In this document: piece by piece, positions 8,830-38,047 of the stretch
Numbering within the stretch: the stretch's first letter is position 1
How the letters are laid out: every line of letters begins with the position of its first letter
Assembly: GCA_965285935.1 (NCBI GenBank)
Contig: OZ260663.1
Location: forward strand, 20,646,001 to 20,710,000
Length of the DNA: 64,000 bases
Source of the DNA: Ophelia neglecta
Taxonomy: Eukaryota
Direction: 5' to 3'
Notes under the pieces: generated by a model
Seen by the model: only the letters and a program-made list of their open reading frames with translations
Told to the model about the DNA's origin: nothing
Databases searched by the model: none
Translations under genes and position numbers: made by a program

Positions 8830-9224
8830 AAATTTGGAGACTTTACGCTCTCGCAACTGCCCTTGTTTTTTTTCAAGGATTGTCCTAACATCCGTTCTTT
8901 GGCTAAGCTTTGTAGTTAGAATATCATTTTATTGACCCCAAAATAATTCGTCGCTCTGCAAGGGTCGTTTCGAAAGTTAGGAATTTTTTTAGAACGCCGC
9001 CTTTTCTTCAATCTCTTCCTTTTCACGTTTGAGGTACATGATAATGGCAACAAAAGTTCCTGTTTAATAAAACAGCAGCAATATCACGATGTAGAGAAGG
9101 GCATGTCAATCTTGATCAGCCAGATGTTCTAGTCTTGTCTTGACCGTGTCTTTAATCTTAATCAGTTTACGAATTATAACCATGGCTCTGCTCAAACAGG
9201 GAGGGACAATTTTGATTCAGACAT
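8830..9224 (-). pseudogene. Pseudogene of the KCNE-like single-pass membrane protein family (copy C)
   Basis: Minus strand reads LADQD*HALLYIVILLLFY*TGTFVAIIMYLKREKEEIEEKAAF*, then after a +1 slip in an A run NFRNDPCRATNYFGVNKMIF*LQSL. Clearly homologous to copies A and B. Stops at 9106-9108, 9064-9066 and 8989-8991. Confidence 0.9.
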
Positions 9225-11707
9225 TGTGAATAACGAGAAATATCGTGTTGAATATCAAGCAGCCCCTTTCTATAGCTGCCCAAATGCTATTGATTATCTA
9301 GGGGCAATTGTTGCAGTACATAACCAATGTTTAGTCTCTAGTCGGCGAGCTATTGGTTGATAAAGTGGTCATGTGGGTCCAGCAGTAGGTGCAAATGACC
9401 CATTAGCGGCTGGCTAAAGTGCTCTGCCATTTTGTTTATCACCGGATTTTCAGACTGCTGAAAACATTAAGTCAGCAAGTGTGCTTTATTGGGGTATAAA
9501 ATAATTCTGTGACAGCTGGGCGGGCTATTGACCAGGATGAAGGGACTGGCCTTCAATTCATCATATTGCAACAAACACAATTTCCCAATATAATGCATTC
9601 AATATCACACGACTCCGATAATATCGTAATGCAAATATAACAATAATTATGGATATATATTACAACAGAGGTCTGAAATCTTTTAACTCGAGATTAATTT
9701 CGTATGTGGAGCTAATTTCATGTGCATGTTTAGTGACCTACTGGCATCAGATTTGGCCACCTATGTTTCTAGCTGACTGGCACGAGGACACTACTGATGG
9801 TCCGACCTGAATAGCATGATCATAGTTCTTATTTGTTGCCAATTATCGTTCAATCACAGTGAATTATTTATTTTACAGAACTAAAGGCCTAATTTAACTT
9901 ATGCCAATGACCATGGCTACTGGTAAATGTGTATAAGCCACTGTATTAACTGTGGGTGTCGTATTTGCTTGTTATTCACGAGTTAAAGCATAATACACTT
10001 GTACCAAGAGAATTATCAATGCACGACAGACATACCTGGACCTCCCATCAAACTTAAACGCCCAACTATGAACACGAAAGTGAACAACAACGATTTGGCT
10101 TCCATGGTTTAATGCGTTGGATTGGACGAATCTCCATTTTATCATCCGATTTGAAAAATGATTCAGCCATGCGTCATCTCCTTAAAGCCCAATGAAACAA
10201 AAAACTTAACCTCAATGAGAAAGGCACATTATAAAAGATGAATTGCGCTAAGACATTTAGGAAAAGTACTCTCTGTATAAGATGTCGGTGATGACAGAGA
10301 CTAATACAATAACCCTACCCTAAATACATCATGGACGCTATTCCCTTGTTTTTTCTCATTAATCTAGTGTTTTAATCCAGTATTTTTTCACGCTGACATA
10401 TTGCTTAAACATACCAATGGAACAATCAGGAGAATGTCAACACTCTATACAAACAAACTGTAATCGGCGAGACGTAATATGTCTTCACACATCATGGCGA
10501 CAATAGTATCTATGTAATACCAATATAATATTAATCAAAATGACTTTAATTATTATACTCACTGCCATCTAACGGGTAATAGACTGTCATATGAATCAGA
10601 AGACAATGCACACAAAAGAGATACATATCAAATCAATGCTCATTAGGATGTTTTGTGTCAAATTCGGATGTTTTCTTTTTCACAAGAGATATGCCTAAAT
10701 TTGTATATATCTTCCGGACTTCGCTTCTGTAATCTCAACATCACACGGCCCTTAGCTGTTGTCGATTGATTTTCATTTGTCTGATGTTTTTTTTTTTCAA
10801 ATCTAGGGCTTAAAGTGATTAGCACATAATCTCTACTTATTAACTTCGGTAAATGAACATACCCATACTTAATTTGAAATCTTCTGGATTGCAAAATACG
10901 AAATGGTAACAGGGCGGCCACTTGCAGAGATTGACAGACACAGATACCTATTTAATTCATGCATGCCTCATGTATAGCCTTGACTGTATAAATCAATAAT
11001 CTACATTCAACAGTATGCGGTTCTTACGATCAATTTGTCCAACTCATTGGTATGTTTTTTCATTCATCTGTAGTGGTCATCCACTCAGATTTTATTGCCA
11101 GAGCCATTATGAACAGAGAGTAAGTGAAGTGTTAGCATGTATATTAACTTATCGAGAACAAAATGAAAAGATCGATGCTGAGAGCCATATTATATGTTCA
11201 TTGCCATGCAGATTACCTAGGTTATAGGAACGAGCTAGGCCGCGACTGTCGGTAGCTTAATACAAGCACATGATTTCCAGTCAGAGGCTCATTATTTAGC
11301 CTTTTCAGACATAGAGTAAAATAAAATAACAAGAATTCTACATTATCTTGACTTCCTTCACTAACTTTAAAAAAATGAAAAAAAAATGATTACGGAGGTA
11401 TTTCCTATCTCCATACTTAATTGCATACGAGTGCCTAGCACGATCTGATTTAGAGCAGCAGACGATAAGGTACCTAATCCTCACGTGATCTGATTTCTTA
11501 TGACTTCCTAAAGGATGCAAGTTTAGAAACTTCGAAAACTACACAAAAATATCGATCAGACCCACCTTTCATTTGCTCTACATGCCACTTTTCAAACCAA
11601 ATAGTGTCACTACCGGATTCGTTGAGCTTTATGCTAAAATATCATTCCTAATAATATTATACTAAACTACCCTTCGTAATAGTATTGTGTACACAGTGAA
11701 TGAATTT

Positions 11708-12080
11708 ACTCACCAACTGTGAGACCGTCCATTCCGATTTTCTAAAAGTATCACCGTCTGAAATCAATATGTGAGATTTCCTTTTAATGTATCGTTATGG
11801 AAATATACGTGTATGCTTATGGGCATGTTCATTCCAATGAAAACATTGCAGCAACAATACAGAGAGACAAATGATGAGTCAGTCATTAAAGGTTGGTGCA
11901 TATCGATTTCACAGCTATTCAAGACACAGTTTAATTCAATAGTATTGATCGTTCCACAGCAGGGCAGACATGCGGTTGTGACGTAAATTATCAAAGTGAC
12001 CGGCTTGTTCCATTAGAGCACGTGCGAATGAGTGGCTGAGTTAACAATCCAATTCCGTCCGATTATGATGGTAGATTGCA
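11708..12080 (-). promoter_or_regulatory. Putative non-coding upstream exon (donor G|GTGAGT at 11713) and promoter-like conserved element of pseudogene C
   Basis: tactcaccaactg...gtccatt resembles the donor region upstream of copy A (tactcaccagttgtccatt, 15793). 11875-12080 is paralogous to 610-810. Confidence 0.45.
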
Positions 12081-14621
12081 CATATATGCACGAAACAAAT
12101 TATCTCGAACAATACATGTATTCACCTACAAAAGAGGACTGCAATATGTGTACTATAATATACTCTTCGAACAAGTCCGTATAACAATGGCGGGATTTTA
12201 ATGAGCATTGGATAATAATAATTATGGTCAATAGTATAACAATGATTCACCTTCAGAAGGATGGGACCTTCCCTTGTGTCATGCGGTTAAAACCTTTTCA
12301 GTACATCAATAGAATTGTACATCAACCCTTAACATTCCCAACCACACACACACGCTCTAAAAATGTTTCAGACTCAAAAAACTGGAAAGTACTTGAGATG
12401 GTGAGATCAGTAAGTTCCTTTGGATCGCATTTTATTCGGCATTGCCATGGTGACTATACATATATTACTATTCAAATAAAAGTTAAGCAGTGTTCATGCA
12501 AAGCCTATATCGTTACATCCCAGTTATTTTACTCCTGTAGCGCTGGTAAGTTTAGCGCTATTTTTATAACAGTGTTGTTGTCACCATTTTACTGTGAATA
12601 AAAAAGTAAAGGCCACTAGGTTGCAATGCCAGGATTATTCGTGGTAAGTTTTTCCCATCTTACGATGTCTCTAGCACCAAAACCAACGATCAGGACTGGT
12701 GGAATTCCATTCTCAGTATCATATACTACTTAACCCCAACGAATGTACTTTGTTATTCAATCCAGGATGGTTCAAGTCTGAAAAAGAAGAGTATGTGACA
12801 GGATCCAAGTGTTAACATAATTACCAAAAGAATATTTACGGCTTATTTACAGGTAGCGAGCTGATGGTGGTTTATGTGCTTGTGGATGACTATGTAATCA
12901 CAGCAACGCTCTCTTTACCTTTGCATTGCCTTCATCATAATTGCGCTCTTCATATTCAACCTGATAAAACAAATTCCTACTTAATAAAACGGCAATGCAG
13001 CTTAAACAATCAATATCATTATTAACAGGAGCGCCTCTTTGTCCTTTATTTCACAATCTCGTCAACACAGCTTTTGATAGCACAATGCGCTATTAAATTG
13101 TCTGCTTGATTGGGTACTCTGAAAGGAGGACAATTACAAGTTATACATTCGAACCTGAATCACCTATTTATCTCACAAAATATCTGAAGATCAATGACTG
13201 TGAGTTTGAATAGTCAGTGAATCAACTAGTTAGTTTCCTAGACAATAGAAAAAAGTCATCAAATAAAGAGAGCCGTGGAATGTGCTAGAATAAAACTGGG
13301 GGATGGGTGGGTGAAAGAACATGGTGTTATTGGAAAGAACAGAGTGTTATTGGAAAGGTTTTTTAGGGTGGGGGATTAAAGATTTGATGTAACGGGGTTC
13401 AATTGTCTCTCGGTGCATATCTTTTCCTGAATAATAAGTACTTACAATTGCTTTTCTTTAGAGCATAAATTTATCTTTAAGGAACAGATTACTATGGATA
13501 TTGTGAATTTCCCCAGGGAATGAAGAAGATGAAAGTTACCAGTTTAAAAGTAACTGGGGCAAAAACTAAGAATAAATAATAACCTGGAAGTGAAAATAAG
13601 TAATTGTCTACAGGACCATCACATGTTATCTTTTAAAACCAATTTCTCTCAGCTAGCAACATAAAACTAAAATAAAAAGATTGTTGTTATCGTTGATGAT
13701 TAATGATGTGTACACAACCAATTGTCCACCAGCTGTATCCTTGCAAGTGGACCACCTATTGGTTTGAATGCCTCGGGCGTACAGCGCTGCTGTAAAATTT
13801 ACTACCAACTCGGGACTGACAAGTCAACGCCAAGCTGATCCTGCTGCAATTTTCGATTACAATATAACATAAAAATTGTTCCGCATTGGGGAAAAGGTGG
13901 TGAGAAAGCGCCAACGATGTAAGCAAAAGTTCTGTAGCAAACGTGAGTTTCGACAACCGCTCCCTCCTAATTGATGACCAAAACCCACTCTCCCTTGAGT
14001 TTGATGCTGGTTTGAGTAATATATCTGGCGTGATGTTTAGAATTACGCAATAAGCTATCGGAGAGAGCACGGAAGTCGATATCCAGAAGACAAACCAAAT
14101 AGTAAATCGATACAATTCTATCAAACCAAGCATGAATTGTCAGCAACCTTGGCTGCAGACTCACAAACATAACACCCACATCTCACAGTTTAAATTATAG
14201 TGTAATGAAATCCAGGCATACAACCAAGAATACCAAGAAGTAAATGGTTATTTATTGTCGAATTGTATCCAATACAACTCCTGGGATCTTCAAGATTATT
14301 CCGTGACACGATTAACCTTTTTGAATCTTACATGTTTTGTTTGCAAGAGGGGATCGTTCTGTCATTCACAGTTAGCTACTCAGAGTAGAAATAAGAGTGG
14401 AACTAAAATCAGTATTCCTTTAACAATGAATGTCACTCACCATTAAGACAATTTCGTTTATTGAGGACGATTACCTTTTTTAAAGTGCTCGGTACAAACC
14501 ATCTCCATAACGGACTCTTGAACAATAGAAATTAGTAATCCAGTAGAAACGTGCCGTGTGTTTTTAAATGTTTGCTCTAAGGCCACGAGGTAATGTATGT
14601 ATTGATTTTAAAGGTGTAATT

Positions 14622-15349
14622 CTACAATTTACACGTTGCAGGAATTTGCACGACTACCTCATCGCCTGCCGAGCTATCGGTGTGATCGTTAGCCTCGAGT
14701 GATTTCGAACTAGTGGAATGTTGAGACGGAAGCAGTTTAGGGGCAGACGACACTATGTCCCGTTGCTGGGGAGCAATGTTTGCTTCCGGGAGCGGTGTTG
14801 TTGGCACGGACTTACTCAGTGTTTGTAACGCTATTCGCTACTGCGTCTGGTATGTTTTATCATTAATGACTCAGAAATGGTTTTAAATTTCATAGATATT
14901 CTTCCTTTCCTGCATTCGACCTTTTCACCAGTCTCCGAAAGCAACCCGACACTTTCCGGTGGCGCCACTGTGGGCCTATTTTTTGCTGACTCTTCAGCTT
15001 TCAATTTTTGTTCCAAAGTCTGTAGATGTAATACCATCTTTTGGACCCGGAAGCGATGGGCTGCTCCTTCCGGGTTGTTTCGAAAGTTCAAATAATTTTC
15101 GTATGCTGCCTCTTCTTCAATTTCTTCCTTTTCACGCTTAAGGTACATGACAATAGCCACAATAACTCCTATAGAATAAAACAGCAACACCACCACGATG
15201 TAGAGAAGGGCGTGTCGGTCGCGATCGGCCAGCTGCGACAGGCCTGCCTCCGATGTTCCATTGGCCGTCTTCTTCGTCAGCTGACCCAAACCGACATTAG
15301 TCACCATGGTGATGTTATGGCAGACGGCTGTCAGATCTACGTTTGGCAT
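14622..15349 (-). CDS. KCNE-like single-pass membrane protein, copy A. ORF 14831-15349 (172 aa); the ancestral C-terminal tail continues in another frame to 14622
   Basis: No signal peptide, sequons N12 (NIT) and N30 (NGT), one TM at aa 47-70 (ALLYIVVVLLFYSIGVIVAIVMYL), then KREKEEIEEEAAYENY. Highly similar to copy B. 14622-14835 (RIALQTLSKSVPTTPLPE...KLL...KSL...EVVVQIPA) aligns to the copy B C-terminus after a 1-nt frameshift near 14836. Confidence 0.8.
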
Positions 15350-15507
15350 TTAAGTATTATCCTTTATTGAATAGTTTATCACTGGATCATGTTAAGACAG
15401 CCTTCACGGCAATCATATCTACCGTTGTTTTTGTGTGGCACTCAATCCCAGGATGCATTGCGCCTCGTAAGAATATGGCTCATAGTCTGTCTGGCTCAAT
15501 GGAAAAT

Positions 15508-15799
15508 CTGAAATGGGAAAAACAACATGTATCAGATTCAAAGATATTACATGTAAAGCACAAAGTAATTCTGAGATAGAGAGAAAGGCAATAAATAGCG
15601 GGAGTGAACACCCGGCAGACAAAACCGAATCATCAATCTAGAATAGTCCATTATACGGTCCGAAATCATCAGAAAACTGAAGGCACAGGGCCCACACATC
15701 AATCGATCTCTCTCCAGCTCCTAAATAGTAAATAAAATTGTAACGTAAATAATAAAATATGCAAACATAAACATATGATTTACTATGAAAAGTACTCAC
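15508..15799 (-). other. Putative 5'-UTR intron of copy A
   Basis: Minus-strand donor CTG|GTGAGTAC at 15799 and acceptor TTTTTCCCATTTCAG| at 15508. The coding region lies within one exon. Confidence 0.55.
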
Positions 15800-18162
15800 C
15801 AGTTGTCCATTATGTTGTTCAGAATACAAAATAACAAACGAGCATAAAAAGTTCCAGATATGAAATATATAGAGTTAACTAACTAGTAAAATATAAAGTA
15901 CTGGACCCTATTTGCATGTGTGTATCCAATTACGTTCATCCTGACGATGACAGGTGGAGTGGATGAGGCCTATAAGCGAATGTTGATAGAGGCATTTAGC
16001 CACCTGTGACGTTAGCCATAAGAACTATAGATTGTATGGCAGTGTGTGTGATAAGGGTTTTGGACGGCAATGCGGTTAATCAAAGACTTGAGGATGTCAA
16101 TTAGCAAATGGCATAACCATTGATAACTATTTAGTACTAGGCCAGACACTCATGTCCTGTTGAAACTGTGTTGCTAAGAAGCAATCTTTAATTTCCCGCT
16201 GCGGCTTGTTTCATTATTAAAGAGCGCAAGCAAAGGGTGATGATTCAATATTAAGAGCGTGAGGTCATTCTAAGCCAGGTCCCACACCATATGAAGTGTA
16301 TAGGATTGCCTATATATTCGCGCACATGCATCAAAAAGTTTCCCAAAAGAAAAATCAACTATTCATCCACTTATTGTTGTTTTTTTGTACAATCGTTGAG
16401 TTTGATTGTACAAAAAGATATCGATTTATAAAATGTTGAGGAAATAGAAAATATGAAGTCCAATATAACCATGCCCTCAACTATTTACTGGCATTAGTTT
16501 GAGCCAACATCGCAGAGCGAGGATTGTGGCGCAGACTTCATGGTATGGGCGATCCATGAGCTATTGATTAATTAAGTGGCCATGTAGATCTAATAGGAAA
16601 AGGCAATGAATCGTTTCCGGCTGGCTGAAACGATTCCCACGTCGACGGCATGGACACGATTTAGATTATTAAACCCATTTACCCTGGATATGGGCCCCAG
16701 TTGAGTATTTATGGACTTGACAATGACATTCTGAGCCCATTGATCCTGAACAAACAGCGCTAATTTTGAAGGATTGCAAACACAACTTTCAGCCAGCCTC
16801 ACGCCAAATAAAAACCAACCGACAGAAAACTTCATTGCTGTTTAGGAATGGTCGCATAGAAACTAATAATAATCGTTATTATTCATAGATCTTAAACAAT
16901 CGGATTTTGAGTTGAACCTGTTCAATATCATGTTTGAAATAATAAAAGTGAGTTTGTACAACCATATTAAGGCCCCATAAATACATAAGAATCCCCTTCA
17001 ATTAAATTTTTTAACAAGAGATGTATGTAAAAATAAAACTAATCAATAAATATTTGGTGGAATAAATCTAATCAAATAAATTCGACAATGGTGACCAAAT
17101 TTCCACAATAGTAACATCTACAGGAAACTGAATATGCCCATAATATTCGAAGATAACACCTCCCCAATGTATGTGGACATTCGATCTTTAAAATGGCGGT
17201 AGTATTGTTCATAACGCTCTTTTTTTCAAACTTTGTCCAGTTACTTGAAAATCCACTTGAACCACCATGGCTAGGTGATTTAAAAACTGAAGTTATTACC
17301 CGTTTATGATTAATCTCTTAGAAAAAGTACACCATGCGTGGCACAAAGATTAAACTTTGGACTGCTTATGATCACACGAAGGACGTATGCATATATCCCT
17401 AACATCTAGCCATGTTATTGTAAATAGAATCAAGGACATAAATCCGTGGGGTATTTTCTATCCTTAGGACTTGATTACCATATTCCGCATACCTAGCACA
17501 CCTGCTAATTCATTGAAAGATCAAAGACTAAACTTCTCCGACCCTAAGATTGCAATTGATATCTGAACTCAACTGTTCAAGACTGGTATGCAATAGTTGC
17601 CATATATGCTTTGGACAGGTCTGGTTAAATGGGGAATGGATCAGCTGGACCAATTTGTTATTGATAATTTATATGGTGGTGACATTGTGAATGATAAGGC
17701 CAAAAAGCTAACTGGGTCAATGAATGTAAGAGCTAATGACTGGTGTTTAAATTAGATAGCTCTGCTGTAATACTAATGAGCCTGTGGTCAAAGGAGCTAG
17801 ATCGACTTGTGACATCGGCACTTGTAGTGAAGGCTTTGCATGTCAGCCTTACCACAGCCCATGTACTATTTTCTCATCCAATATATGATTCCATTGATAA
17901 CATCTACTTTTTTCATTAAGGAAATCGTTAATACAACTGCTGAAATCAAAGGCTTAGTTTATGCAGATATAACATTATGTTTCATTCCTTTCATTCGGTA
18001 TAATCTATAAGACAATGGCGCATAGATACGTCTAGGTGTGAAGGCAACTCGACGTGTCCATAGTCTGTTGTGTAATTTGTTATATCATAAAAAAGCTCAT
18101 GATATATCCGTTTTTTAATTGTTTCCTGTTGTTCCTATGTCACTGTAAATGTCTTAACTTAA

Positions 18163-19208
18163 AGGCCGGTTCACACTGCCCAAAAGTCGCGTAAACGCAT
18201 GAATCACGCATAAAAATTTGGTTGTGCGTGCTTGTCCGTCGAGAATTTGATCATTTTCGCCGATGTACGCGATGAAATATCACCGATGAATGGCGCAAGA
18301 ACTACGGAAAGATCACGCACAAATCACTAACAAACCACGCACGTCAGCGCATAGACACGCAAAGGCCCCAAACAAAGAGAGTACGTGGTTGTACGCGACG
18401 TAAGCTCAACGGAAAACCACGCATAATCTGCGCACTATCACTACTGAACTATACGTATGAATTGCGCATGAATCACGCATGATTCGCGCATGAACTGCAT
18501 CGCACTCAGTTGCGTCCGTTCCGTGCATATATAAATGATGCGATCGCAGCCTCTTGGCATTCCCGTTCAAGTCGCAAGCAGCACTTTTATCCAGGATTTC
18601 TTCTTCATCCGATTCATACTTATAACCCTGACCATGCCTCCCAAGAAAGGCCGTCAGCCGACCAGGACCAATCCAAAGAAGGTCGGTGGGAAAAAAAAGA
18701 GGAAGGTCCCAACTGCTCCTCCTATAGAACATGTGCCTGGTGATGCTGTGTCTCCAGGGGATGCCTCTGCGAATGACGAGGTCGCCAGGTCCCCGAGGTC
18801 CCCGAGCCCTCCCCCACCTGTTACATACGCCATTTATTTTTTTGTTCAGTGATTTTCAGTGATACGTAGGGGTTACAAGCGCTAAACATGCACTAAACAT
18901 GCGTAATATATCTGCTAATCATCAGTGGAAAGTCGTCGATGAACGCGATTGCGGCAACAGTTTCGCGAACGATCACTGATATTCCACGCATATTTTACAC
19001 ATTGTCCGCGCAAGAGCCACGCAAACTACGCAAAAATAACGTAAAACAGCGCAATACTGCGTAAACTCTTACGTGAAAACGAGTTTTGAGCTGTTCAAAA
19101 CTTGGAAAACGCGCAAATCACGGATGTATCGCGGAGGTATCGCGTAAGACTCGAAATTTGTGCGTGATTCATGCGTTTACGCGACTTTTGGGCAGTGTGA
19201 ACCGGCCT
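18163..19208. mobile_element. Non-autonomous PIF/Harbinger-type DNA transposon (~1046 bp, internal deletion derivative)
   Basis: Perfect 48-bp TIR AGGCCGGTTCACACTGCCCAAAAGTCGCGTAAACGCATGAATCACGCA and TAA target duplication (18160-18162, 19209-19211). Subterminal (C/T)ACGCA repeats. Internal ORF start MPPKKGRQ..KKKRK at 18634. Confidence 0.9.
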
Positions 19209-21059
19209 TAATTAAGTAGCAACCTAAATCATATTTAACCAAACATCCTGACAATAAGAATGAGTGTGATCAGAGAATTAGTCTTATTAATAAATTATGT
19301 CGCTTGTAAACGAAAAATAGCCAGCAAAATTCTTTCAGTTTGGCGCAGTACTTAGCGTGGTGTAAATTTATGGGTTACGCATAGGCATTTTGACAACTGT
19401 CTGGTACTTTGAGAGCCGTCCAAAAGTCAATAAATCACTCAAGGATGTTTGCATTCAAGCAAGGGTGATAGTTTATCACATAAATGTCTTATTATACAGC
19501 TGAGCAATTGTTTGTATGGACAATTCAAACATTTATGTATCAGTTACTTTTTTATTGCTTTAATTATAGTCCTTCTGTCTCTCCTTAAATCATGTATAAG
19601 CTACGCAATACAATTCAACCCCCACCCCTTCCCCCGCCTATGGCTTGGTTAATCAAGCCATAATCATTCTTTAGATTACTAAGCGTAGTTCAAAGCCATC
19701 ACACCAACAAGCTGCACTTATATATGTCTACTTAGCATTGAACTAATGTCTAACTAATCACAATCGGAATGTAACTTGAATACTCTAACAAACATTACAA
19801 TGTCGCAGTCTCTAAGTGCTCAGTACACACTCAATGTTTGAATTACGGCCATGTTATTCAGTAACAACATTTCAAAAGGACCACCAATTAGAGTTAGTTA
19901 CAAAACTGTTAGTGATATGTCGTAATTAATCATGGTGATGCCCTTCACTCGCTGTCAAACATGCATCTCTCAAAGATAAAATACACGTTTTCGCCAGTTA
20001 ATACAATAAATACCAAACGAGATTAGTGAATGCAGCAACAGTTCTTGTAAGGCTTGAACGAACTAGTCCAAATAGTCATGTGTCTGTCCTGCATAGTTAG
20101 TAAAAGTACGGCTCATCATTGTCTATTAGATTTCTAGAGAACTTATAATATCTGCGGTTACAAGTCGAATTAAATCACAGGACACATCTGTATAGGCATG
20201 TAAGCTTGTGTCAATCTGTAGTAGAAAATAAATCAAATAGACAATGTGCGTTGTCCACGATTTACTCGCTGACTAAGGCCCCCCATCAATCTACAATTGT
20301 CTATATGCATAGTTGCAGCTGATATGTTCTTTATTTGTTTTGATCAATCTAGTCACTAACCATAGACCGCACATCTATATATTCCATGTTGGGCGAAGCT
20401 ACTTGAACTAAAATTTCTATTGCTTTTTAATATAGTCTTCACTGCTGTCTGTGGCCAGATCAATACAGATATGTGTAGACAGCTGGTGTTGACACTTGTC
20501 CATCCATATTTACATTGATGTATATGTGGAAGCAGTTCACACAGAGCAGACCTGCGTTATTGTGCAGTAAATTTGTTTCAATTGTACTTATATGTTATTG
20601 GCAGAACGAGAATTGACTCCACGACACTCAAAAATGGTATATTAATAAAAAATCCTAAGTTATGATTCAATTTAAATAATCAATTTAGATTAATTGATTA
20701 ACAGTACAGAACCATCATAGGGAGGCGATCAATCACCCGATATCAATATTCATTTAAACCTCCTGTTATGAAATTAAAACTGGAAATTCTAACAAGCCAA
20801 TATCAATCCACTACATAAGGCCCTGCTTGTGAAACAAATGATGTTGCTAAATGTCGAGGGCAATACGAATGAAGACGTTCTTGAACACAAACGACCTGAG
20901 TATCATGCCATAACATCGGGGCCTAGCAATAGCTGGAATATGATATAAGATGCCATATTAATATGCGATTCATATATATTTGTGGTGATTTCATGATGAC
21001 CTGAATGAAGGCAAAGTTTTGAAATAGTTTCCACCACATGTGCGATCCTTTTGTGTGTC

Positions 21060-21690
21060 ATATTATTATTACTAATATTATTTTTTTTATTATTACACAT
21101 TTATATAGCGCTACATACACGATGCTCTATATCGCTTTACCACACTGCAACATTAATGAAAAACATACATTTTAATAAAGTATACAAAGAAGAACACCAT
21201 TAAAATACAAAATATAAACACTAAATGGATGTAAGGTAAAAAAAGAGGTTGAATTAAGAACTTGTCAAAACAAAATTAATAATATTGCCTCAGTTGAATC
21301 TAAAGAACTCATCAAAGTGCCTCTCACAGTGGGTTTTCAAGGAAGTTTTTAAAAACTTCACTGATATATTCAGCTTAGAGTGCAATGGTGGCGAATCCAA
21401 GAGTTCTGGGGACATCACAGAAAACTGGCGTTCACAATATTTTTGTGTCCTATGAGTGGGTACAATCATGGTGTGAGTAGAGCTATACCGTTTCTGTTTT
21501 GTCAAGACATGTATGCTGGGGCAAGATATTGTAGCGCATTGAAAGTCAGTAGATACACCTTGAATCTGAAGCACTGACTGACAGTCAGTTGATGTTAATC
21601 TTTGAGTACAGGTGTAGTGTAGTTAGACTTTCTGATTCCAGTGACTAGTGTCGCTACACTGTCCTAAACCCGTTGCAGCCTATTCACCAT
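21060..21690 (-). mobile_element. L2-clade LINE 3' fragment
   Basis: Remnants NRLQRV..LVTG.RK, TPVLK, FSVMSPELLDSP and LKTSLKTH, corresponding to AFSVAAPRLWNSLP..LKTHLF. 3' end GTAAAGCG...GCGCTATATAAAT followed by a (TAA)n tail at ~21060-21140. Confidence 0.7.
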
Positions 21691-26500: not shown

Positions 26501-26689
26501 GGTAGGCCTTTACCTATGATGCTGTCATAAAAGCCATTTGGAATGCAAACGCGTTGAATATACAGATGTGAGGATGCTTATTGCAATTATCACGGGTCAT
26601 CAACGATTTTATACACGTTTATTGCACTGGCGTCATTTAAGATTGAACTAAAAACTTTATTTTATATGTATAAGAATTTAATCAAGTTG

Positions 26690-26975
26690 TTTTCTTCCCA
26701 TTTATGCTTAAATATTTCATTGTCCAACAAATCGCTTGGTAAGTAATGCCGGCAGAGTCCGAACTGGTACCCTTAAGCATAAAAGATTTCATACATGTAA
26801 ATTGCACCGTTCGGCGTCCTTTTAGGACAAACTGAATAGTGTATTTTATATTTATTAGACATAAATCAAGTTTATTTCTTCCCATTTTTGCTTTAATATT
26901 TTATTGGCCAACAAATCGCTTAATTGGTATGTAATATACCGGCAATGAGTCCATGCTGGTGCCTTTTAAAGACTG
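26690..26975. repeat. Diverged direct duplication of ~90 bp, period ~185 bp
   Basis: tttcttcccattt(a/t)tgctt..atattt..ttg.ccaacaaatcgct..tggta.gtaat..ccggca..gagtcc..ctggt.cc at ~26690 and ~26875. Confidence 0.7.
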
Positions 26976-28651
26976 AGCTTATATTTTTTTTATCAATGGG
27001 AGCAATGCAAGCCGTATGGTTGAGTGGTATATGCACGCGTTCCGGAAGCCAGAAGACACAACCGCAAATAAACAGCAATCGATGACTGATTACCGCAAAA
27101 GTACCTGGATACAGGAATGTTCTTACCTTGTTATGTACCAGGCAGAATAGTGTATCTTATTCCACAAACAGCAGGTAACGCACGTATAGTATCAATACTT
27201 AATACATAGTAGACCAGCTGCATTCACTTTTATTATTAAATTCTTTATGGAAACAAAGTATCTGTTTTATCAAGTGGATGTCTTAGCAAATAAGTACATG
27301 TGCCTTATAGCAGAAAAATACTAATTATATTATCGGTCTAAATGTCACTGCAAGCAGTTTATTATCCCATAATTAGTTGTTGTTTAGAACAATCAAATGT
27401 TATAAAACCCGAAAATGTGTTCAAGTGATTATCGCGATGAAGAATTAAGTGGGCTGCAAGACCGTCGTGAAAGTGTAACGAAGGCTACCCGTACCATTAG
27501 ATACTACAGGGTGGCGAAGGGAAATGTACGTACTGCTTATCAAAAATCCCCCCACTTAATATTTAACGTTCCCAAATTTCTGAGGTGTTATGCAATCAAA
27601 TGTTTACTTCAAAATATTCACAAAGAAAATGCAAAAAGTCCATTTATACTCCCATAAACGCAAGATACAATGTACCGCTAAACTAGCCATATTTATCAAC
27701 CTATCCACATTTTATCAGCAAAGTATACAGGTGAATGAAAAGAAAAGGCATTATATCTTCCGATATAATGATAAAATAAGGAATAATGATGTACCATTTC
27801 ATTTCTAACGAGCTGAATATTCTATTTCTTCAAACATATCAAGGATATGGATACATTCACGGGTCCTGGTGATGCCAGTATGATAAAGTGGAATACTCCT
27901 GATGAACAATTTCGGTTGGTTTTATTGGTATACACTAAGGACCGTTACTTTAAAAGGTTCTCTCTTTTCGTTCATAAACTGAAGGAATTCCAAATCTCAT
28001 AGGCAATAAACCATAATTCGAGCTCTTCAGCTTAAATCACTTGCTAGGATCAATTACGGGAAGAAATGGCCTTTTGAAGTAAAACATGCCTGAAGGAGTA
28101 GACTCAAATTGTGTTCGTATGCACAGGAGGGCAAAGAAACGCCGGAGATGACATGGTTTGGATCTTAATCACAGGTTAACGGTAATAGAAGAAATAAGCA
28201 TAGTGTGGAGGAAAATTCAAGCAATCACCGACTAATCATGCCAGGCCTTCTGGGAAATAAGAAAGGTAGTTCCGTATAATAGCCATGGACCGAATCTGCC
28301 CTCGTATGTCAAAAACACCACATCCGGATTGCGAATAACAGCACATATTGCACCGAATTGCCGCCGCATTCCCAAACGACCGAACCCAATCTTTAATGTT
28401 ATTCTCACTCAGCGCACAAAATGAATGACATATAACATAATTTGCACGTAAATTTAAACAGTTGGCGCTGTAATCTATTAATCTTTGATAGAAACGAACT
28501 CCGGTCTGTCTATGGGAAATGAATCTTGGGTTAGCAATATAACACAATTGCCATAGAATGAAATGCAGCTGTTTTTATTATAGCTCAGAGTTTTTTTCCA
28601 CCCATTACATCCTTTGAGATAACGCACTCATCCGTGGCTTGTAATACCCAG

Positions 28652-28888
28652 GGGCCGGTTTCTGGAAGGGGTCTTACGTTTTGGGATTAGATTAGCCTAA
28701 GACCGATTTGCTGAGGCCATGTTCAGCAGTGTTTCCACTGACCAGGATGAAGTTTAAGACCAAAATGGCTTGGTTTAAGACCTAATCCAGCTTCCAGAAA
28801 CCTCGATTAGTGAGTTAAGACCGATTAAGCAATTTAATCCTGATTTTAATCCGAGTTTAGAGTTAAGACCGCTTCCAGAAACCGGGCC
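28652..28888. mobile_element. Harbinger-type MITE (~237 bp)
   Basis: TIRs GGGCCGGTTTCTGGAAGGGGTCTTA and TTAAGACCGCTTCCAGAAACCGGGCC, with CAG on both flanks (CWG-type TSD). Internal reiterated taagacc motifs. Confidence 0.75.
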
Positions 28889-29178
28889 CAGGATGTGCCC
28901 TAGTTACAATAATGCCCTTCAGAAGATAAATTGTTCGAAAGAACATCTCTATGTTATGAAGACACAGTATATCAGTCAGTATAACTGGCACTTTTTATAT
29001 CCCGGGAAACTGTCTGCGCCCAAGTCCAAATGTACTTAGAAAATAAAGAGTTGCCTGCTGCTGGAAGAAACCACACAATGCGTCTTGGTTCGGCAGTAAG
29101 TATCACGAGAGTTTTCATCAGCTTAATCCCGTGCAGGTAAAACTGTAGTCAATGCAATGTAATCCGCTCCGTCTGTAA

Positions 29179-29582
29179 TGATTTGGTGTAGTTCATTATG
29201 TACTGGTCTGCGGGTGTCAGTATCATTTACCTTATGTATAAAGTATCCAAAACAGTTATTCACATTAGCTACGATTTGGTTGTTTTTACAAGACGGATAG
29301 GCAAAGACACACGAGTCAGGTCATTGTGCCTTCGTTCTCATCCAAAACCTCCTATGTTTATTTCATGTAGGTCTTAGTTGATTTGGTGTAGTTCATTATG
29401 TATTGGTCTGCGGGTGTCAGTATCATTTACCTTATGTATAAAGTATCCAAAACAGTTATTCACATTAGCTACGATTTGGTTGTTTTTACAAGACGGATAG
29501 GCAAAGACACACGAGTCAGGTCATTGTGCCTTCGTTCTCATCCAAAACCTCCTATGTTTATTTCATGTAGGTCTTAGTTGAT
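29179..29582. repeat. Near-perfect 200-bp tandem duplication
   Basis: 29179-29378 is repeated at 29379-29578, with one visible mismatch (tac/tat). Confidence 0.95.
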
Positions 29583-29739
29583 ATGGAATATGAAACTTGT
29601 TATTGAACAGTTGTCGTTGATAAAAAACACAAAATATCAACATTGATTGTTTTGTCATAACAAAGAAGAAATATAACTTTAAGCTGTACTTGCAGCCCAG
29701 CTTGGTACAACATATTGCAAAGGAACCATTTAATACGCA

Positions 29740-29846
29740 GCACATTTAATGCTCAACCAGAAATGACTGTACAGCGCTTTTGAACAGTCTCCACTGAAAA
29801 AAAGCGATATAACAAGTTCAATAAATAATAAATAATAATAATAAAT
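29740..29846 (+). mobile_element. L2-type LINE/SINE 3' end
   Basis: tgtacagcgcttttgaacag...aaaagcgatataacaagttc followed by an (aataa/taa)n tail. Confidence 0.5.
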
Positions 29847-30499
29847 GCATTTCTTCGAATTACCATTCTTTGCAAAGCAGAGGAGGCACAAATGATATTC
29901 CGAATTCTAAAACACTATTGATAATGTTCGCATATTTATATACTTTAATTGATTTCTTCTGCTTTTGAATACAAATGCTAATAGGACCATAGAGTAGACA
30001 TAAGATATCATAAATTGTATCTCCATTGGACTGTTATAATCTGTACCGGGCTCGCCGAGTTTTAAACATTATTATATATTCTTTTCAGTTCCCCGTCCCC
30101 TCGAAGAGTGGAACGGGAGACTATCAGTTTAGGGGCTGTCCGGCAAACTAGCCTGATGGAGTTAACAAAAGCCGTTTCATATCTGGTTGTCAAACTTGAA
30201 GTGCCTCTTAAAGGTGCCAACAGCTTGAACTGTATGGTATTTCTGCTAAATCCGAAAAACAAGATGGCTGTCATGACGCAATCAGCGCATTCTGTGTTCA
30301 ACCGCTTGCACCGAGTGTCTTGCGGATTTACCAAAAACCGTTTGAGAGATGGTTATCATGTTAAATTTTAAATACATTTCATGATATTTGATACCCAGTT
30401 GAAGAAAATCTGTTTTAGTATTGACCTTGTGACTGGTGTTCAATATGTTTTGAATCTATCAAAGAACAAAACCTTTGACAGCTACATTAGACGAACATT

Positions 30500-32400
30500 T
30501 AACTTTGAGGATCATATCATTTCCTTCAAAGTGAAAATATCGCGGATCAAAAGAACGGCAGTAGTTCGAATCACAAGTGATATCCGGTAGAATATATCCT
30601 TACTCGCTTAATAATTTCATGAATTTCATATCCATTTGGAGATTAGCCAATCACTCTAAAACAAGGTTTGTTGGGAAAAACAGCAGAAGCGTAATTTGAA
30701 GAGCCATGCTGTTTTCCGAAGTAGAACTAAAAATCCAACATGGACTTGCCGATAACTAATCTACAAAATTGCAAATGGTCATGCCTTTGAGAAAAAAGTA
30801 ATCGTTTTTCAAACGGGCCCCGGGAACAATAACTTAGACTACTCTCACTATAGTCGTTATACTGGTTGATGAATAGCTTCAGCCTCGAGGCAAAGATGTA
30901 ATCCCCAAATGTCACATGTTTGTTACAAAACAATAGTCTGAATGCTTAGCAGATTTGTAATAATTTAGAATTTTAAATATTAATCTTCTCCAAATTAGAA
31001 ACATTAATGCCATATCATCGCCAGAACAATAAAAAAACCTGAGGATGGGAAAAACATGCAGAACAATGTCATCTTTGCCTTGAATTTGGTTTTATATTGT
31101 CGTTAATTCTTTGCTCTTTTCTAAAGAAATTAACTTCGTAATGATTCACAAAGCTGGATAACAGAAATCATTTGTCAATGAATGATGCTTTTTTCCACAG
31201 GAAAATCCTAATATTTATTTTCTTAAGCTCCCAAAACTTTGGTCAGCTGGACCGAAGATACAAGGATTATTTGCTTACTTGAATATCGAGATGACCTCCT
31301 GTCATCAGAAGTCGGAGAGGACCCTATAATACATACATAGGTTCTGTGCTGGGTATCTACCGTCTTTCTTTTTACGATAACACGCCTGGCTTGATTTGAA
31401 AAGACATTACCCAAACCTCATGAAGTTCTGGTAGCATAACCTCATAATGCTATGGTAACCCAACTCTCAAGATGAAATGGTAAGAAACAATCGCAACCTC
31501 GTGATAAGGAAGAAGCACCATCTTAATTGTACAACAGTGAAAGCGACAACGGAGATTTCTGTAACTAAGCTTAAGATTAAAGCCGTCTCAAGCTAGGACG
31601 GCGGTGATTATGACCGATTCCAGCGTTGTAGCATCTGGAAAGCATGTACCATGTCCACCAGACCACCGAAGTTGTAACTCCAGCATAGGCTGGAATCACT
31701 TGGAAATTAGGTAGACTAAGTTTAAGCACTTTGCTTAGGTGTAGAGCACATTGCCTAAGTAGCGCGGTGAAACTCCCGATATTCTGGCCGCGGTACAAGC
31801 AACTTAATAACCGAGCCAACTGGCTCAATTTTTAACAGATTAGTATATGTTCAAATTAGAATAGCTACTCAAAGATCCATTTGATACATCCACTTTGGAC
31901 CTGGAAAAAGAACTCCTTGCTGCTCCATAGCCCCACTTTAAATAAACGATAGACAATAGGAGAGAGATCCACTTTGCGATTTGCATATCAAATACTCGCG
32001 GCCGCTCAACGTTTGTTAATGGATGATACCTTTGACTGGGGAGGAAATAGACGATAATGTGGGATTCGTCTTGAAGTGAAGATATACATTGGCTCCAACC
32101 ATCCTATTGCATGATTATAATGGAATAGCCTGCCCAAACATCCGCAAGTTTTTTCCATTTAGAGTCGGATAGCGACTAAGAGATAAGTCGAAGGACTAAC
32201 AAAAAGTACGGGCTCACTTGGAAATGTCTTGGGCAACCAAGCTTGGTAATACCTATGGGTATTCCTCTAGGTTTCAAAGGAAACTGACTGTGTTTGTAGT
32301 TCTTTGACATTTTGATGTGTAATACAAGTCCGATTTATTATTCGTTCGTGTTTGCTTAATTTATCTTTTTTATGTTCATAATTTACAGTTTATGATGTAG
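30500..32400 (+). mobile_element. Possible highly degraded CR1/L2 LINE ORF2
   Basis: Only scattered motif remnants: GSVLG at ~31340 and KKYGL..LG..LWN-like at ~32200. No intact frame. Confidence 0.3.
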
Positions 32401-35400
32401 AATATTTATATTCGACGATAGCCTGGACGGAGCTGACTATTACCAACAGTTTCGACTCAGCAGAAACCGCAGACAGTTACGAAAAAAACTTCCAGACTAT
32501 TTCTTGCGCAATTGATCCTTCTCTATCAGTCTGCTATGTAATCATACACTTTCTCACCGAAAACATCCGTCCGTAAGATTAAAAAAATGTTGCAGACGAA
32601 ATATACTATAGCATTGAGTTACGTATACACGACGTTTGTCGTATATTTTGTATATAAAGTGTATTTTATTTACTAGAAACCTACACAGATAAGGACTTCA
32701 TGGGAAACAACAAACACACATCTATTAAAGAATGCACAATTTTCAAAGGCATGATCATGACATAAAAGTGCGAGTTTCTTTACAGATATGTTTGTATAAA
32801 AGTGGAAAATCTTTTTTGAATGTTAGGTTCTGCATTCTAAGTATTAAGTAGATTTCGGGGCCCTCGCCCGTTATTAAATCCATTCGTATTAATATACGTT
32901 AAAAAAGTGCGACATCACGTCTATCCCCCCGATGACACTTGCAGAATATGTCATATAATTGTGGAAATGTTTTAAAGTTGTGGTAAGGTAGACGAAGCCA
33001 TACTAGTTTAAAGTGTGTATCGACGGAGTCAGATCAGAAGCCTTGCCCATATAATGTGTGTGTCAAGGGATTCACGACACTTATTATGTTATTCATCATT
33101 ATTCTATATATTTCTATGTATGCTCAACTCCCCTTTACCCATATTTCCATGAAATGTTCTCTCCAGAAAGTGCAGGAAAAACAAGCAAAAAAAAAAAAGA
33201 ATTCTGCTTGATTTGTTAAAATATGCGAAGGTATTACCAAAGTTTTTCAAGAGCGCTAATAGTGTATAATAATATTAACTTGGCATAATGACATCTTTAT
33301 TTACAATGCCACTATTGGCTTACTGTACTTCTAACAGTATATAGATGCCACACCTCTGTGTAAATGAAATAAGCCATTTTGGGAATTGGTGGCGTTTACT
33401 CTATCTGCACCATAAAAAAGGGTGGAAATTTGATAATAAGTTCTTGAGGCAAATGCACATCATATTCCTACACTATAAAAAAAACTTGGAAACCTGCGAA
33501 ATGTGATCAACTTCCATTTTTTAATAATATTAAATGTATCATAAGATACCACACTCATTTGAACAAGGATCTTTAACATGCTGTATAAATCATACGTGTA
33601 TACGGAAATAATTCATCTCTTGTCTGACACTTACTAGAAAATTTAATCCGTCATACAATCCAGATATCCTTGGGCATAGTTCATCTTAGTCCAACGTTAT
33701 CCCCTGGCTCGCATGTTGTGGCATGCCTCGAACTACGGAATACGAGGGACCACTTCTCACTGCAAGTGACAGCAAATTATATGTATCCATTCACCTTAAT
33801 TTCATGACAACCACACCTTTATGGCACTAAGATTTGATATTTTTTTGCCTGCAGCTCACGGTTCTTGATAGTTTTGGACCAACTTAATGGGAAATGCTTG
33901 ATCAATTATTGCTCTGACACATTGATAATGAAGAATGTCCCTGCATTTACCAGAATAAAGTGGTGGGTTATTATCTTTACTGAATTCTTGGCTAGTTATG
34001 CTCTTCAGCAGTTTATTTCAAAGTGGCATCCATGGAACTCGAACCAATTATAGTAGAAGTACAGCATACAAAAATGACAAGATAAATTCCCCAAAATCGA
34101 TCTTGCCAGGATTTTCCGCTAGGACCATTGACTTCGTTGCCCTTGCTAACAGTGGATCAGAGCTGCAGTCTCCCATCTAAGTATAGAACTATGGGAAACC
34201 CCGTGGTGATATAAAACATTCTAGATACTAGAAACTGTATTGTGACAGTGCCTGTGTTTGTTCGGTCTGATAGAGGTCGACTGACAAGATGGCGACTGCT
34301 GATAGTGGGATGGACGTAATGTTCAGAAAAGTAATCGAATGGTATATATAATTATTTTATCAATGAGAAGGAAAGGCATGTCCTAAGTACAATGTGTATC
34401 ACAGAGCTAGCAGATTTTGCAAATATTGACAACCTGTGTTGTAAATTCATACGGTGGGAGGATGGAATATTGCCTGATATTAACATACAACATATGGTTT
34501 AGTTTAAAAGAGGGGCTACCATTTTCATTACTAGCAACTGGGATGTACTGCACGCCGTCGCAGAATACTCAACAGACATAAGACTGAAGCAATACTGACG
34601 GTAGTGTTTCCCTGCTCCACAAGTCGGGTACAATGATTTATCTCTTTAGAACTACGTTACCTTGTGTGACGTACCTCACCGTATTGAACGACATTTTCGT
34701 ATTGACTATTGACTCAGCAGGTATCGGACGATGACGTTTGCTGGTGTGTTCTACCAATGACGGCTCGACACGTCACTAGCAAGTATGTTATAACGGCAAT
34801 TGAACTAGGTTTCTCCTATAATTTTAGGTTGGTTGTAAGATGATAGAAGTTGTACATACTCCACCAAATTTTGTATATGCTGTGCTGGTAACGGGGTATG
34901 GTATTGATCGTTGCCGTCAGTCGTGTTAACAAGAGTGGAGCGCTTGTTGCTAGGGCACACAGCGTGTCTTATTATCTTCATAGATGTCTAGTGACTAACA
35001 CAGACACTAAAATTTAAATTATTACCGCTTATATCTATTTTTTTTGGGCACGTTTATAATCCATTCAGTAGAGTTTTCTGTGCTACTATAATTCAATTTG
35101 TAGTGTGTGTTTCCAAAGCCAGATGCTAGATTACCCGTCCGTCTTGAGCCCGGGTGGTGGGAGTGGTGGGTGGTCGATATACTGAGCGTTTATCTATAGA
35201 ATGAGCATTGCTTCTGGCACATTATTGAATGTTGTTGTCCTTATCTTCTGATAGGCACATCATCCTGTATGACAACGGAATTGTATCATTTATAAATATC
35301 AATTTAATTGTAGCCTGGTTAATCAACCTACTCAGTTACCTGTTTCATTTGAATAGGCATGGGATACTGCAGTAGATCGCAGCACAGCTGCCTCATAATG

Positions 35401-36377
35401 GACATTCAGCACTTTGATTATTGTCGGTTCCCGTTGGGAAACCGCTGTTTAGACTAATTACTAATTAATCCAGGGGGAACAATTCACAGGAAAGGTTTAT
35501 ATAAAAAGTTTTTATTCAATTGAAAACGGTTAACATAATAACAATAATGAGATAAAAAGTGGAATATGTCCATTGAAATGTGAGATTGAGCAAACATAAT
35601 GTCGAGTCATTATAGGTGCATGACTGATTAAGAGAGCATCCAAGCTCTGAATTGCGAGAGGCGTATATGCACTTGGCGTTCCTTTGAATAGCCGTTACGG
35701 CAAATTCATTAACAAATGAAGGGAGCACTTCTTTAAAATACATTTCATTCTCTTAAACGAGTGGAAGGTGTTGAAGCCTAAGTGTGATAATATCAGCCAA
35801 ATACCCTTCTTAAAATCCTAATTCCCTTGATACATATTTCTAGATATTAATTTCCTTGGTTTGTCTGCCGGGTATCAACTCGGTAGTAGTCTCTAGGACA
35901 GACAGGTGAGCAAAATCGTCCAATTTTTCGTTAAGCTTCTCAAAACCAATCATTTGGTATTAATGCCAACTAGTTGACTAGAATACTGTGAAAAAGGCCG
36001 ATCGTCATATAAAAATAACCTATATAATAACTAGGTCGGTGGCCATGTTTTGTTCTTCTCGACATTGAAACATTTTTTACTAGTGATCAACATTGTGTAC
36101 TTTGGTATAAAGTAGTGGAAACACATAATATACATTAGAGGATTTGTATTTCTTAAACTTTGTCAACTAAAACGGATCACCAAATTAAATGAGGTATCCA
36201 TTAATTTGAACAATGCCAAATCAATCGTGTAAAACTGTTTCAGATTCTTGAGCCGTATGTTAGTATTCGTGATACGATTACTTATCGGTCCTATCGTTAA
36301 AACGGTAGACATAGCGAAAACGTGCACCCTGTAGTATGCAGATTCCTGAAACAACATGATCACTCATGATTAAAGAG

Positions 36378-36840
36378 TGCTATTGAACATGTAGTCTTGG
36401 GTTTCGAGGCAAATATACCAGTTTTGAGTATCGAGAATGAACATTCGAGTATCCAGTTTGACATTTCGATTTTAAGGAGGGAAAGAACGACTGCCGAGTA
36501 TGAAAGTCCGGACACCGACTATGAGATTTGGTTTCAGCGCAATTGAAATCCCGAGTTTCTGTTATGAATAACGAGTGTCGTTATTTTATATATTCAGGCA
36601 TTCTAAAATACTATTATACAGGATTAAGAAGTGTTTATTGAATTTAAATTATGTCGTACATCACGTGTTCCTCACATGTTACTCGAGTATTCATACTCGA
36701 TACACGAACTTTCATATTCGATACTCAAACATTTATCTCAAAATACGAGAATTCATGCTCGATAATCAAATGTTCACATTTGAGACTCGAACTACTATAA
36801 ATGAAGAATTATTGGCTCGAAACTCGATGTTCAGTAATAT
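36378..36840. mobile_element. Degenerate foldback/MITE-like element
   Basis: Imperfect inverted ends (tattgaacat..gtttcgag / ctcgaaac..atgttcagta). CGAGT motifs in the left half and ACTCG motifs in the right half. Confidence 0.4.
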
Positions 36841-37219
36841 TCATGATTAACCGAGTTGATAATTATTGAAAAATTACTTTCAAGTTTCTTGTGCCCACTT
36901 CGGTCGACCACAATTATTTTGAACACCAGGAAAATCTGGTTGCATTACTAACTAGGGATTATGCCTTCTCGTTACATTCCTTGATAAACTGCAGCTCATT
37001 CCAGGAACATTTTTCAGTACACCGATCACGCCATTTCTCACAGTCATTTTGAATGTATGGGCACTATTAGTCTTGTATCTTTCTTAGACAATATTTGTTG
37101 CTCAAAACCATGCCCATAATTTACTTTTTACTTTGATAAACATAGAGAAACGCATTGTGCGATATCCACATAGACTCAGAAGCAAGTCTATTTTGCATAG
37201 AGTTCTACTCGGTCAACTT

Positions 37220-38047
37220 TCATTTCGCAGACAAGTGGACAACAACCTCCTGGTCTGGCGACTTATTTGTCGGACTGTCTTCCCCTAGAGACTTTAAAAT
37301 GATTTCACTTGGAGCCAAAAGCAATTTCTGAGCCGTCGCCGATACGCCTTCTTTACATGGAAGCTTGTCTTCTTCTGGGCGTGGACTTGTTGATCTTGAT
37401 CTACTTAGCGTCCGTGAAGCCCCCCGTTTCTTACTGGTGTGCCCCTGTGATCTTATTGACAATGAAGGCGTTTTGAATTTAACAGATGCTCTACTTCTCT
37501 TGCCAACCGGCTCTACACCAGACTCGGAAAGCAAAGTAATGCTTTCAGGTCGCCCAATTGTGTCCGTTTTCTCTGCCAATTCCTCCACCCTTCCTTCTAT
37601 TTCTAAATTATGTAAAGTTTCTAAATTCTGTAGATGCTTAATCATCCTTTGGACCCTGAAGCGATGGGCTGCTCCTTCCGGGTTGTTTCGAAAGTTCACG
37701 TAATTTTCATATGCCGCGTCTTCTTCAATCTCTTCCTTTTCACGCTTTAAGTACATTATCATTGCCACAATAATTCCTATTGAATAAAACAGCAACACCA
37801 CAACGATGTAAAGAAGGGCGTGTCGATCGTGATCGGCCAGCTTCGATGGGCCTAATTCTAGTGTCCCATTGGCTGTCTCCTCGGTCAGACGATCGGACAC
37901 GTCACTAGTCACCATGGTGACATTACGGCAAAACGCCGTCAGACCGACGCTAGGCATGCAGAGGCCCGCCCACGAACATCCACGGGGTCGTTGTGCTGGA
38001 GGGTTATCCAATGAGATACTATGACGTTGTATGTTTGTGCTAGTCAT
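37220..38047 (-). CDS. KCNE-like single-pass membrane protein, copy B (275 aa; start conserved with copy A is Met31 at 37957, giving 245 aa)
   Basis: Intact single-exon ORF with sequons NVT and NGT, TM ALLYIVVVLLFYSIGIIVAMIMYL, juxtamembrane KREKEEIEEDAAYENYVNF and a Ser/Arg-rich disordered tail. Upstream acceptor TTTTTATTTCAG| at 38180. Confidence 0.85.
   Translation of the reverse strand: MTSTNIQRHSISLDNPPAQRPRGCSWAGLCMPSVGLTAFCRNVTMVTSDVSDRLTEETANGTLELGPSKLADHDRHALLYIVVVLLFYSIGIIVAMIMYLKREKEEIEEDAAYENYVNFRNNPEGAAHRFRVQRMIKHLQNLETLHNLEIEGRVEELAEKTDTIGRPESITLLSESGVEPVGKRSRASVKFKTPSLSIRSQGHTSKKRGASRTLSRSRSTSPRPEEDKLPCKEGVSATAQKLLLAPSEIILKSLGEDSPTNKSPDQEVVVHLSAK

Follow-up and report, generated by a model that had tools for sequence, protein, structure and literature searches.

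A tandem cluster of single-exon genes for one-helix membrane proteins in Ophelia neglecta belongs to a protostome-wide family with a probable, distant link to KCNE channel subunits

To which family do the small one-helix membrane proteins encoded in tandem in the genome of Ophelia neglecta belong, and are they relatives of the KCNE (MinK/MiRP) potassium channel subunits? The question is raised by a stretch of 64 kb from this genome (assembly GCA_965285935.1, contig OZ260663.1, positions 20,646,001 to 20,710,000; "the window" below means this whole stretch), which contains a tandem cluster of three paralogs, all on the minus strand. An earlier note, made from the DNA letters alone, had described three co-oriented KCNE-like paralogs, and the count holds: there are copy A, copy B, and a dead third copy. 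We consider it moderately probable that the cluster arose by tandem expansion, specific to this lineage, within a protostome-wide family of single-exon genes, the products of which are N-out glycoproteins and distant homologues of KCNE (MinK/MiRP).

The proteins of the two intact copies share one design. Each contains two N-x-T sequons (N12 and N30 in copy B, in which a conserved Cys stands just ahead of the first) and a single hydrophobic stretch at residues 47-69, and neither has a hydrophobic signal sequence at its N-terminus, in keeping with the first description of these proteins as having two sequons, one transmembrane helix, and no signal peptide. After the helix, copy B continues with Y-L-K-R-E-K, an acidic run, a Y..Y motif, the proline of NNPEG, and then the conserved RFRVQ(K/R)M. 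The AlphaFold model of copy B, calculated with the family alignment, has a continuous helix from residue 37 to 91 with a predicted local distance difference test (pLDDT) score of 90-97, a break at the NNPEG proline, and a second helix at residues 93-123, the remainder being disordered. Most relatives terminate in a class-I PDZ ligand of the form S/T-x-V or S/T-x-L, with TSV, TNV, TFV, TDV, and SDV among the endings; of the window copies, A closes with SAK and B no longer has its tail, while a further copy to the left of the window retains SAV. Because the N-terminal sequons are conserved and the C-terminus of most relatives carries a PDZ ligand, and hence should be cytosolic, the proteins are predicted to be N-out/C-in single-pass (type-I) glycoproteins.

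The family is large. A word-indexed search returned 27 unnamed relatives, and a hidden Markov model search of 1.84 billion representatives gave at least 329 clusters (50% identity) at E <= 0.001, with 128 at E <= 1e-10. The transmembrane helix is almost invariant throughout these clusters, its residues Y, I, V, L, F, Y, S, and G being unchanged or nearly so across the family. Members are found in annelids, molluscs, a nemertean, chelicerates, a myriapod, and crustaceans, so the family, which had been thought lophotrochozoan, was drawn too narrowly: the chelicerates, the myriapod, and the crustaceans have it as well. Among the named matches listed there is no insect or vertebrate protein, while chelicerates, the myriapod, and crustaceans are well represented, a distribution that may point to loss of the family in insects. 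The named members are annotated only as "hypothetical" or "uncharacterized". Cluster look-ups of the closest relatives returned no names, and the neighbouring genes on the contigs of two relatives (P0003 and P0008) were uninformative.

We distinguish four subfamilies, the labels of which are our own. Subfamily 1 is that of the window and includes a member from Capitella teleta; subfamily 2 is represented by Sinanodonta and Elysia. Subfamily 3 is found in molluscs only (Dreissena, Mya, Lottia, Patella, Biomphalaria, and others) and ends in LLVTDV. Subfamily 4 comprises proteins of about 110-160 amino acids (aa) that end in GKVTFV and come from horseshoe crabs, spiders, ticks, a scorpion, and a sea spider, and further from the centipede Strigamia, crabs, lobsters, annelids, and a nemertean. 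The split between subfamilies 1 and 2 on one side and 3 and 4 on the other is well supported in the tree (100/96).

Does the resemblance to KCNE reflect common descent? It might instead be that the family is real and conserved yet unrelated to KCNE, the likeness being that of a short N-out one-helix glycoprotein, which would act through its PDZ ligand and invariant helix on another partner such as a receptor, a transporter, or a non-Kv channel (Kv, voltage-gated K+). Much of the evidence that speaks against such an unrelated family comes from subfamily 4. Among the relatives, the commonest Pfam family is ISK_Channel (PF02060), matched by 26 of the 134 at E <= 0.01 with a best value of 6.9e-7; the next family accounts for 7. 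Several family members exceed the curated Pfam gathering cut-off of 22.1 bits for this model: six arthropod members of subfamily 4 score 24.8-28.7 bits, and the same six carry a precomputed PF02060 match, while two more, one from subfamily 3 and one from subfamily 4, reach 24.1 and 23.5 bits. The first ten subfamily-4 proteins examined all match ISK_Channel at E < 0.1 and in the same register (10/10).

Searches of the PDB sequences (177,635 distinct) with subfamily-4 profiles point the same way. A profile of 19 sequences had seven KCNE chains as its best matches (KCNE2, E 0.0052), and a profile of 60 sequences gave nine matches at E <= 10, all nine of them KCNE, with E values of 0.0021 for KCNE2, 0.0032-0.036 for KCNE3, and 0.04-1.4 for KCNE1. 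The subfamily-4 profile thus finds KCNE and nothing else in this set, as three paralogues with E of 0.002-0.04, in alignments that run well past the helix; the alignment with KCNE2 spans residues 5-95 and takes in the N-terminal sequon, the helix, the Tyr with its basic anchor, and the Y..YI motif. The window's subfamily is in turn tied to subfamily 4 by hhalign, with a probability of 99.5% and E 1.5e-22. Two independent language-model queries also return KCNE clusters: 15 of the 30 ESM Atlas clusters nearest to copy B carry ISK_Channel, KCNE4 included, as do 16 of the 30 nearest to the subfamily-4 gene of O. neglecta itself, KCNE1 and SMIM34 included. Pfam, the profile searches of PDB sequences, and the language-model features agree in making KCNE / ISK_Channel the nearest known family, as the earlier note had held, and on these searches KCNE is the only credible known relative of the family.

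The likeness extends to the layout of protein and gene. Vertebrate KCNE1-6 and lamprey KCNE0, like the present family, are proteins of about 100-300 aa, encoded in a single exon and without a signal peptide. They share with it the N-terminal N-glycosylation sequons, the one transmembrane helix ending in Tyr and then basic residues, the Y..Y(I/L) about 12 residues past this Tyr/basic anchor, and the cytoplasmic helix-break-helix, and they too occur as tandem paralogues with pseudogenes. The register in which the two had originally been aligned (sequon, transmembrane helix, Tyr plus basic residues, Y..Y(I/L)) is borne out, and Y-L-K-R-E-K of the window proteins aligns with Y-I-R-S-K-K of KCNE1. 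Two details of that first alignment change. The acidic run had been said to replace the basic cluster of KCNE, but K-R-x-K is kept after the membrane Tyr, and the run, EEIEEE in the window proteins, aligns with LEHSND of KCNE1. The KCNE motif DP(F/Y)xxYI had been matched to AAYENYL; its Y..Y(L/V/M) part is kept, whereas the Asp-Pro is absent and the first proline comes later, in NNPEG. Unlike KCNE, moreover, the family has a far more conserved helix, and most of its members end in a PDZ ligand.

Two other groups of proteins resemble the family. MPS-1 to MPS-4 of C. elegans are likewise invertebrate single-pass proteins and have been described as KCNE-like Kv auxiliary subunits (PMC13516689; PMC4210162), a likeness drawn here by description only; they are described as nematode-specific, unlike the window family. 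The language-model neighbours of copy B include an unnamed nematode cluster. The named language-model clusters nearest to the subfamily-4 gene of O. neglecta are chordate SMIM34 and SMIM34A (scores 0.94 and 0.93), in which 13-31% of members carry ISK_Channel; these are neighbours in feature space, without an alignment or an E value.

A number of results weigh against kinship with KCNE, and they begin with the window proteins themselves, since every direct test on their subfamily falls below significance. In Pfam both copies match ISK_Channel best, at 15.9 bits for copy A and 15.5 bits for copy B (E 0.011 and 0.014), and this model scores 12.4 bits with the left-hand copy and 13.6 bits with the subfamily-4 gene of the O. 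neglecta genome. In the profile comparison with Pfam ISK_Channel that had been proposed as a check, both window copies therefore miss the 22.1-bit cut-off. Against the PDB sequences, the subfamily-1 profile finds no KCNE at E <= 10 and the mollusc subfamily-3 profile finds nothing; a core profile of the whole family ranks KCNE2 and KCNE3 first, yet at E of about 1, level with the helix of CD28. Foldseek comparison of the AlphaFold model with the PDB is uninformative (best E 4.2), as expected for two long helices. False matches driven by the helix reach about 20 bits: a spurious bacterial CrgA attains 20.6, which puts helix-only noise 3-8 bits below the best ISK scores. The DP(F/Y) motif of KCNE is missing, the stretch after K-R-x-K is acidic, and neither this acidic juxtamembrane run nor the PDZ ligand is seen in the KCNE sequences aligned here. 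Finally, the divergent paralogues L017-L021 of the same genome (described below) give zero ISK_Channel signal. What gives us most pause is the basis of the signal: a short hydrophobic region carries it, and only by transitivity does it extend to the window proteins. Of the KCNE-like identity first proposed for the cluster, then, the part that stands is that KCNE is the nearest known family; the window copies themselves lie below the cut-off, and their link is transitive via subfamily 4. Given the evidence on both sides, we judge true homology to KCNE, on the sequences compared, to be reasonably likely, and we regard a conserved family unrelated to KCNE as doubtful, while giving it real weight.

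Single-sequence and full-length-profile searches of the PDB sequences were set aside; they returned noise only (FAP106 and poly-Q proteins), because of the low-complexity tails.

If the proteins are distant homologues of KCNE, a role as auxiliary subunits of Kv channels may be inferred by analogy. The invariant helix would pack into a cleft of a Kv channel (KCNQ or another), between the voltage sensor and the pore, like KCNE3 in KCNQ1, and such burial, with several partner helices around it, would fit the conservation of essentially every helix position. The long juxtamembrane helix, with K-R-x-K and then the acidic run, would lie at the inner face of the membrane, near the cytoplasmic parts of the channel, and the S/T-x-V PDZ ligand of most members would tie the complex to a scaffold of the Dlg/PSD-95 type. 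We note that the O. neglecta genome has two KCNQ loci, split into exons.

What, then, is the state of the genes in the cluster? Decay has progressed to a different degree in each copy: apart from its last residue copy A is intact, copy B keeps its core without the tail, and the third copy is dead. Their features are collected in Table 1.

Table 1. Features of the gene cluster, in positions of the window; the splice-acceptor-like sites are called from sequence only
Feature	Position	Strand	Remarks
Copy A open reading frame	37220-38047	-	275 aa, core intact
Copy A likely coding sequence	37220..37957	-	245 aa from conserved ATG at 37957
Copy A transmembrane helix	37751..37819	-	residues 47-69, ALLYIVVVLLFYSIGIIVAMIMY; family-invariant columns
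Splice-acceptor-like pyrimidine tract and cag upstream of copy A	38180..38195	-	AG at 38181-38180
Copy B open reading frame	14831..15349	-	172 aa; N-terminus, transmembrane helix, and juxtamembrane core intact
Copy B transmembrane helix	15143..15211	-	residues 47-69; sequence and AlphaFold model
Relic of the original C-terminal tail of copy B, out of frame	14622..14807	-	aligns with copy A tail
Splice-acceptor-like pyrimidine tract and cag upstream of copy B	15508..15522	-	AG at 15509-15508
Pseudogene fragment, core only (transmembrane helix and juxtamembrane part)	8925..9150	-	4 stop codons

The copy A protein is most likely the shorter of the two forms listed, because both the DNA similarity to copy B and the homologues of other species begin at the internal ATG. 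Its tail terminates in ...VVVHLSAK, with another residue in the place of the hydrophobic one that ends the PDZ ligand. Copy B meets an early stop after 172 codons owing to a frame shift in the tail, where about one base is missing near the SLMIK codons, so the range 14622-15349 first assigned to it is not a single open frame; the relic of its original tail, ...GDEVVVQIPATCKL, still aligns to ...DQEVVVHLSAK of copy A. At the protein level the two copies are 63% identical over 168 aa (E 9e-63) and about 87% identical over the 71-aa core, and at the DNA level their similarity is 82% over 341 nucleotides (nt), a match that starts exactly at the copy B ATG and the internal ATG of copy A. The uninterrupted open reading frames contain the whole conserved protein, consistent with the single coding exon claimed for these genes, and the acceptor-like site upstream of copy A is possibly the end of a candidate intron in the 5' untranslated region.

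The pseudogene, a fragment of about 190 nt, is shorter than the 8830-9224 at first given for it, the similarity covering 8962-9150: it matches at the DNA level over 8962-9126 with 79% identity and at the protein level over 8962-9150, with interruptions by one TGA and three TAA codons. About 5 kb to the left of the window lies the fourth copy (G000:C5:20640742-20641239, minus strand), which has a full tail ending in HMSAV and thus an intact PDZ ligand. An ATG is missing from the conserved start of this copy, and translation from its first in-frame ATG would drop the first sequon; the true start may lie upstream in another exon, or the copy may be defective. A maximum-likelihood tree unites copies A and B with the left-hand copy in a single clade (support 100/93). 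Since the three readable copies group in this way, we take the cluster to be a local expansion with decay, and the single local clade, together with one dead and one truncated copy, supports the birth-and-death evolution proposed for it at the outset.

Selection on the three readable copies was estimated with the method of Nei and Gojobori, as the ratio of nonsynonymous to synonymous substitution (dN/dS) between them. The ratio is 0.10-0.19 for the 70-codon core (dS 0.37-1.03), 0.33-0.39 for the whole gene (dS 0.65-0.87), and about 0.5-0.6 for the tails (dS 0.79-0.99). The core of copies A and B and of the left-hand copy is under strong purifying selection, and this ratio, with the core identity of copies A and B given above, bears out the near-invariant core noted before. 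These values also bear on the possibility that all window copies are decaying, non-functional remnants and that the functional gene or genes are to be sought at other loci, such as the subfamily-4 gene at 34.08 Mb. The dead third copy, the frame-shifted tail of copy B, the copy A PDZ ligand without its terminal hydrophobic residue, and the left-hand copy without the conserved ATG would all suit such remnants; the cores of copies A and B and of the left-hand copy, however, keep their low dN/dS despite dS of 0.4-1.0, and the open frames are intact across 172-275 codons, and we consider it very improbable that the cluster consists of remnants. Three independent read runs, from one sample of the same organism, give even coverage over genes and spacers, without joints, and we therefore take them to be DNA and not RNA.

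The cluster is not the only site of the family in this genome. The subfamily-4 gene of O. neglecta lies at 34.08 Mb on the same chromosome and groups with subfamily 4 in the tree (97/91). Another five, more divergent paralogues (270-560 aa, each with a single exon and one helix) lie at 64.10-64.14 Mb (L017-L019) and at 45.15-45.19 Mb (L020-L021), again on the same chromosome, so that all family genes found in the O. neglecta genome are on one chromosome. Against the core profile of the family these five score E 7e-8 to 8e-3, and none has a Pfam family. Their helix is followed by a basic R-K-N-K, their tails are long and disordered, and some of them terminate in S/T-x-V or S/T-x-L. The basic RKNK made them candidates for a bridge to KCNE, an idea set aside because they give zero ISK_Channel signal. 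A genome-wide search with the Pfam ISK_Channel model returned no canonical KCNE exon, only low-complexity junk in three unrelated places.

The window also contains other elements. An uninterrupted open reading frame of 1216 aa at 45900-49550 on the plus strand encodes an endonuclease/exonuclease/phosphatase domain and a reverse transcriptase, and looks like a full-length retrotransposon without long terminal repeats, of the long interspersed nuclear element (LINE) type. A second LINE-like element at 55008-59680 on the minus strand is spread over four consecutive open reading frames, with the reverse transcriptase at 55008-56705 and an endonuclease fragment at 57393-58121. Between 40450 and 43400, long open reading frames of 778, 423, 230, and 170 aa overlap on both strands, and their Pfam matches are weak, below cut-off or marginal; read depth is raised 5- to 25-fold in the part of this region examined (up to 41400). 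The region looks like a repeat and not a gene.

How does the family stand with respect to what has been published? No kcne genes have been reported in protostomes (PMC11659587; PMC13516689), and a 2026 paper on lamprey KCNE0 states that invertebrates have so far yielded no canonical KCNE genes (PMC13516689). In the full-text literature we found no report of a protostome KCNE-like family, the nematode MPS proteins excepted. As far as we could see, the link to KCNE is latent in the databases, in the automatic Pfam matches on some arthropod members, yet undescribed. That the family has been overlooked so far would be explained by the lack of an insect member among the named proteins listed.

These findings lead us to a wider proposal, which is tentative and which we hold with less than even confidence: KCNE-type subunits would not be a vertebrate invention but would go back to an ancient KCNE superfamily of the Bilateria, of which the protostome family would form the invertebrate branch; in this branch the subunits would be anchored through PDZ ligands, have an acidic juxtamembrane helix, and tune Kv channels in the excitable cells of invertebrates. 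With a protostome family that is widespread and strongly constrained, and that alone resembles KCNE when PDB sequences and Pfam are searched, the origin of Kv auxiliary subunits can be put to a direct test. Should the KCNE role prove false, there would still be a large, unnamed, and very conserved one-helix family with a PDZ ligand, for which a partner is needed. Should the proposal be true, it would supply invertebrate neurophysiology with a missing class of channel regulators, and it would separate the ancestral features of KCNE, namely the helix, the Tyr with its basic anchor, and the Y..Y motif, from the derived ones, namely DP(F/Y) and the loss of the PDZ ligand.

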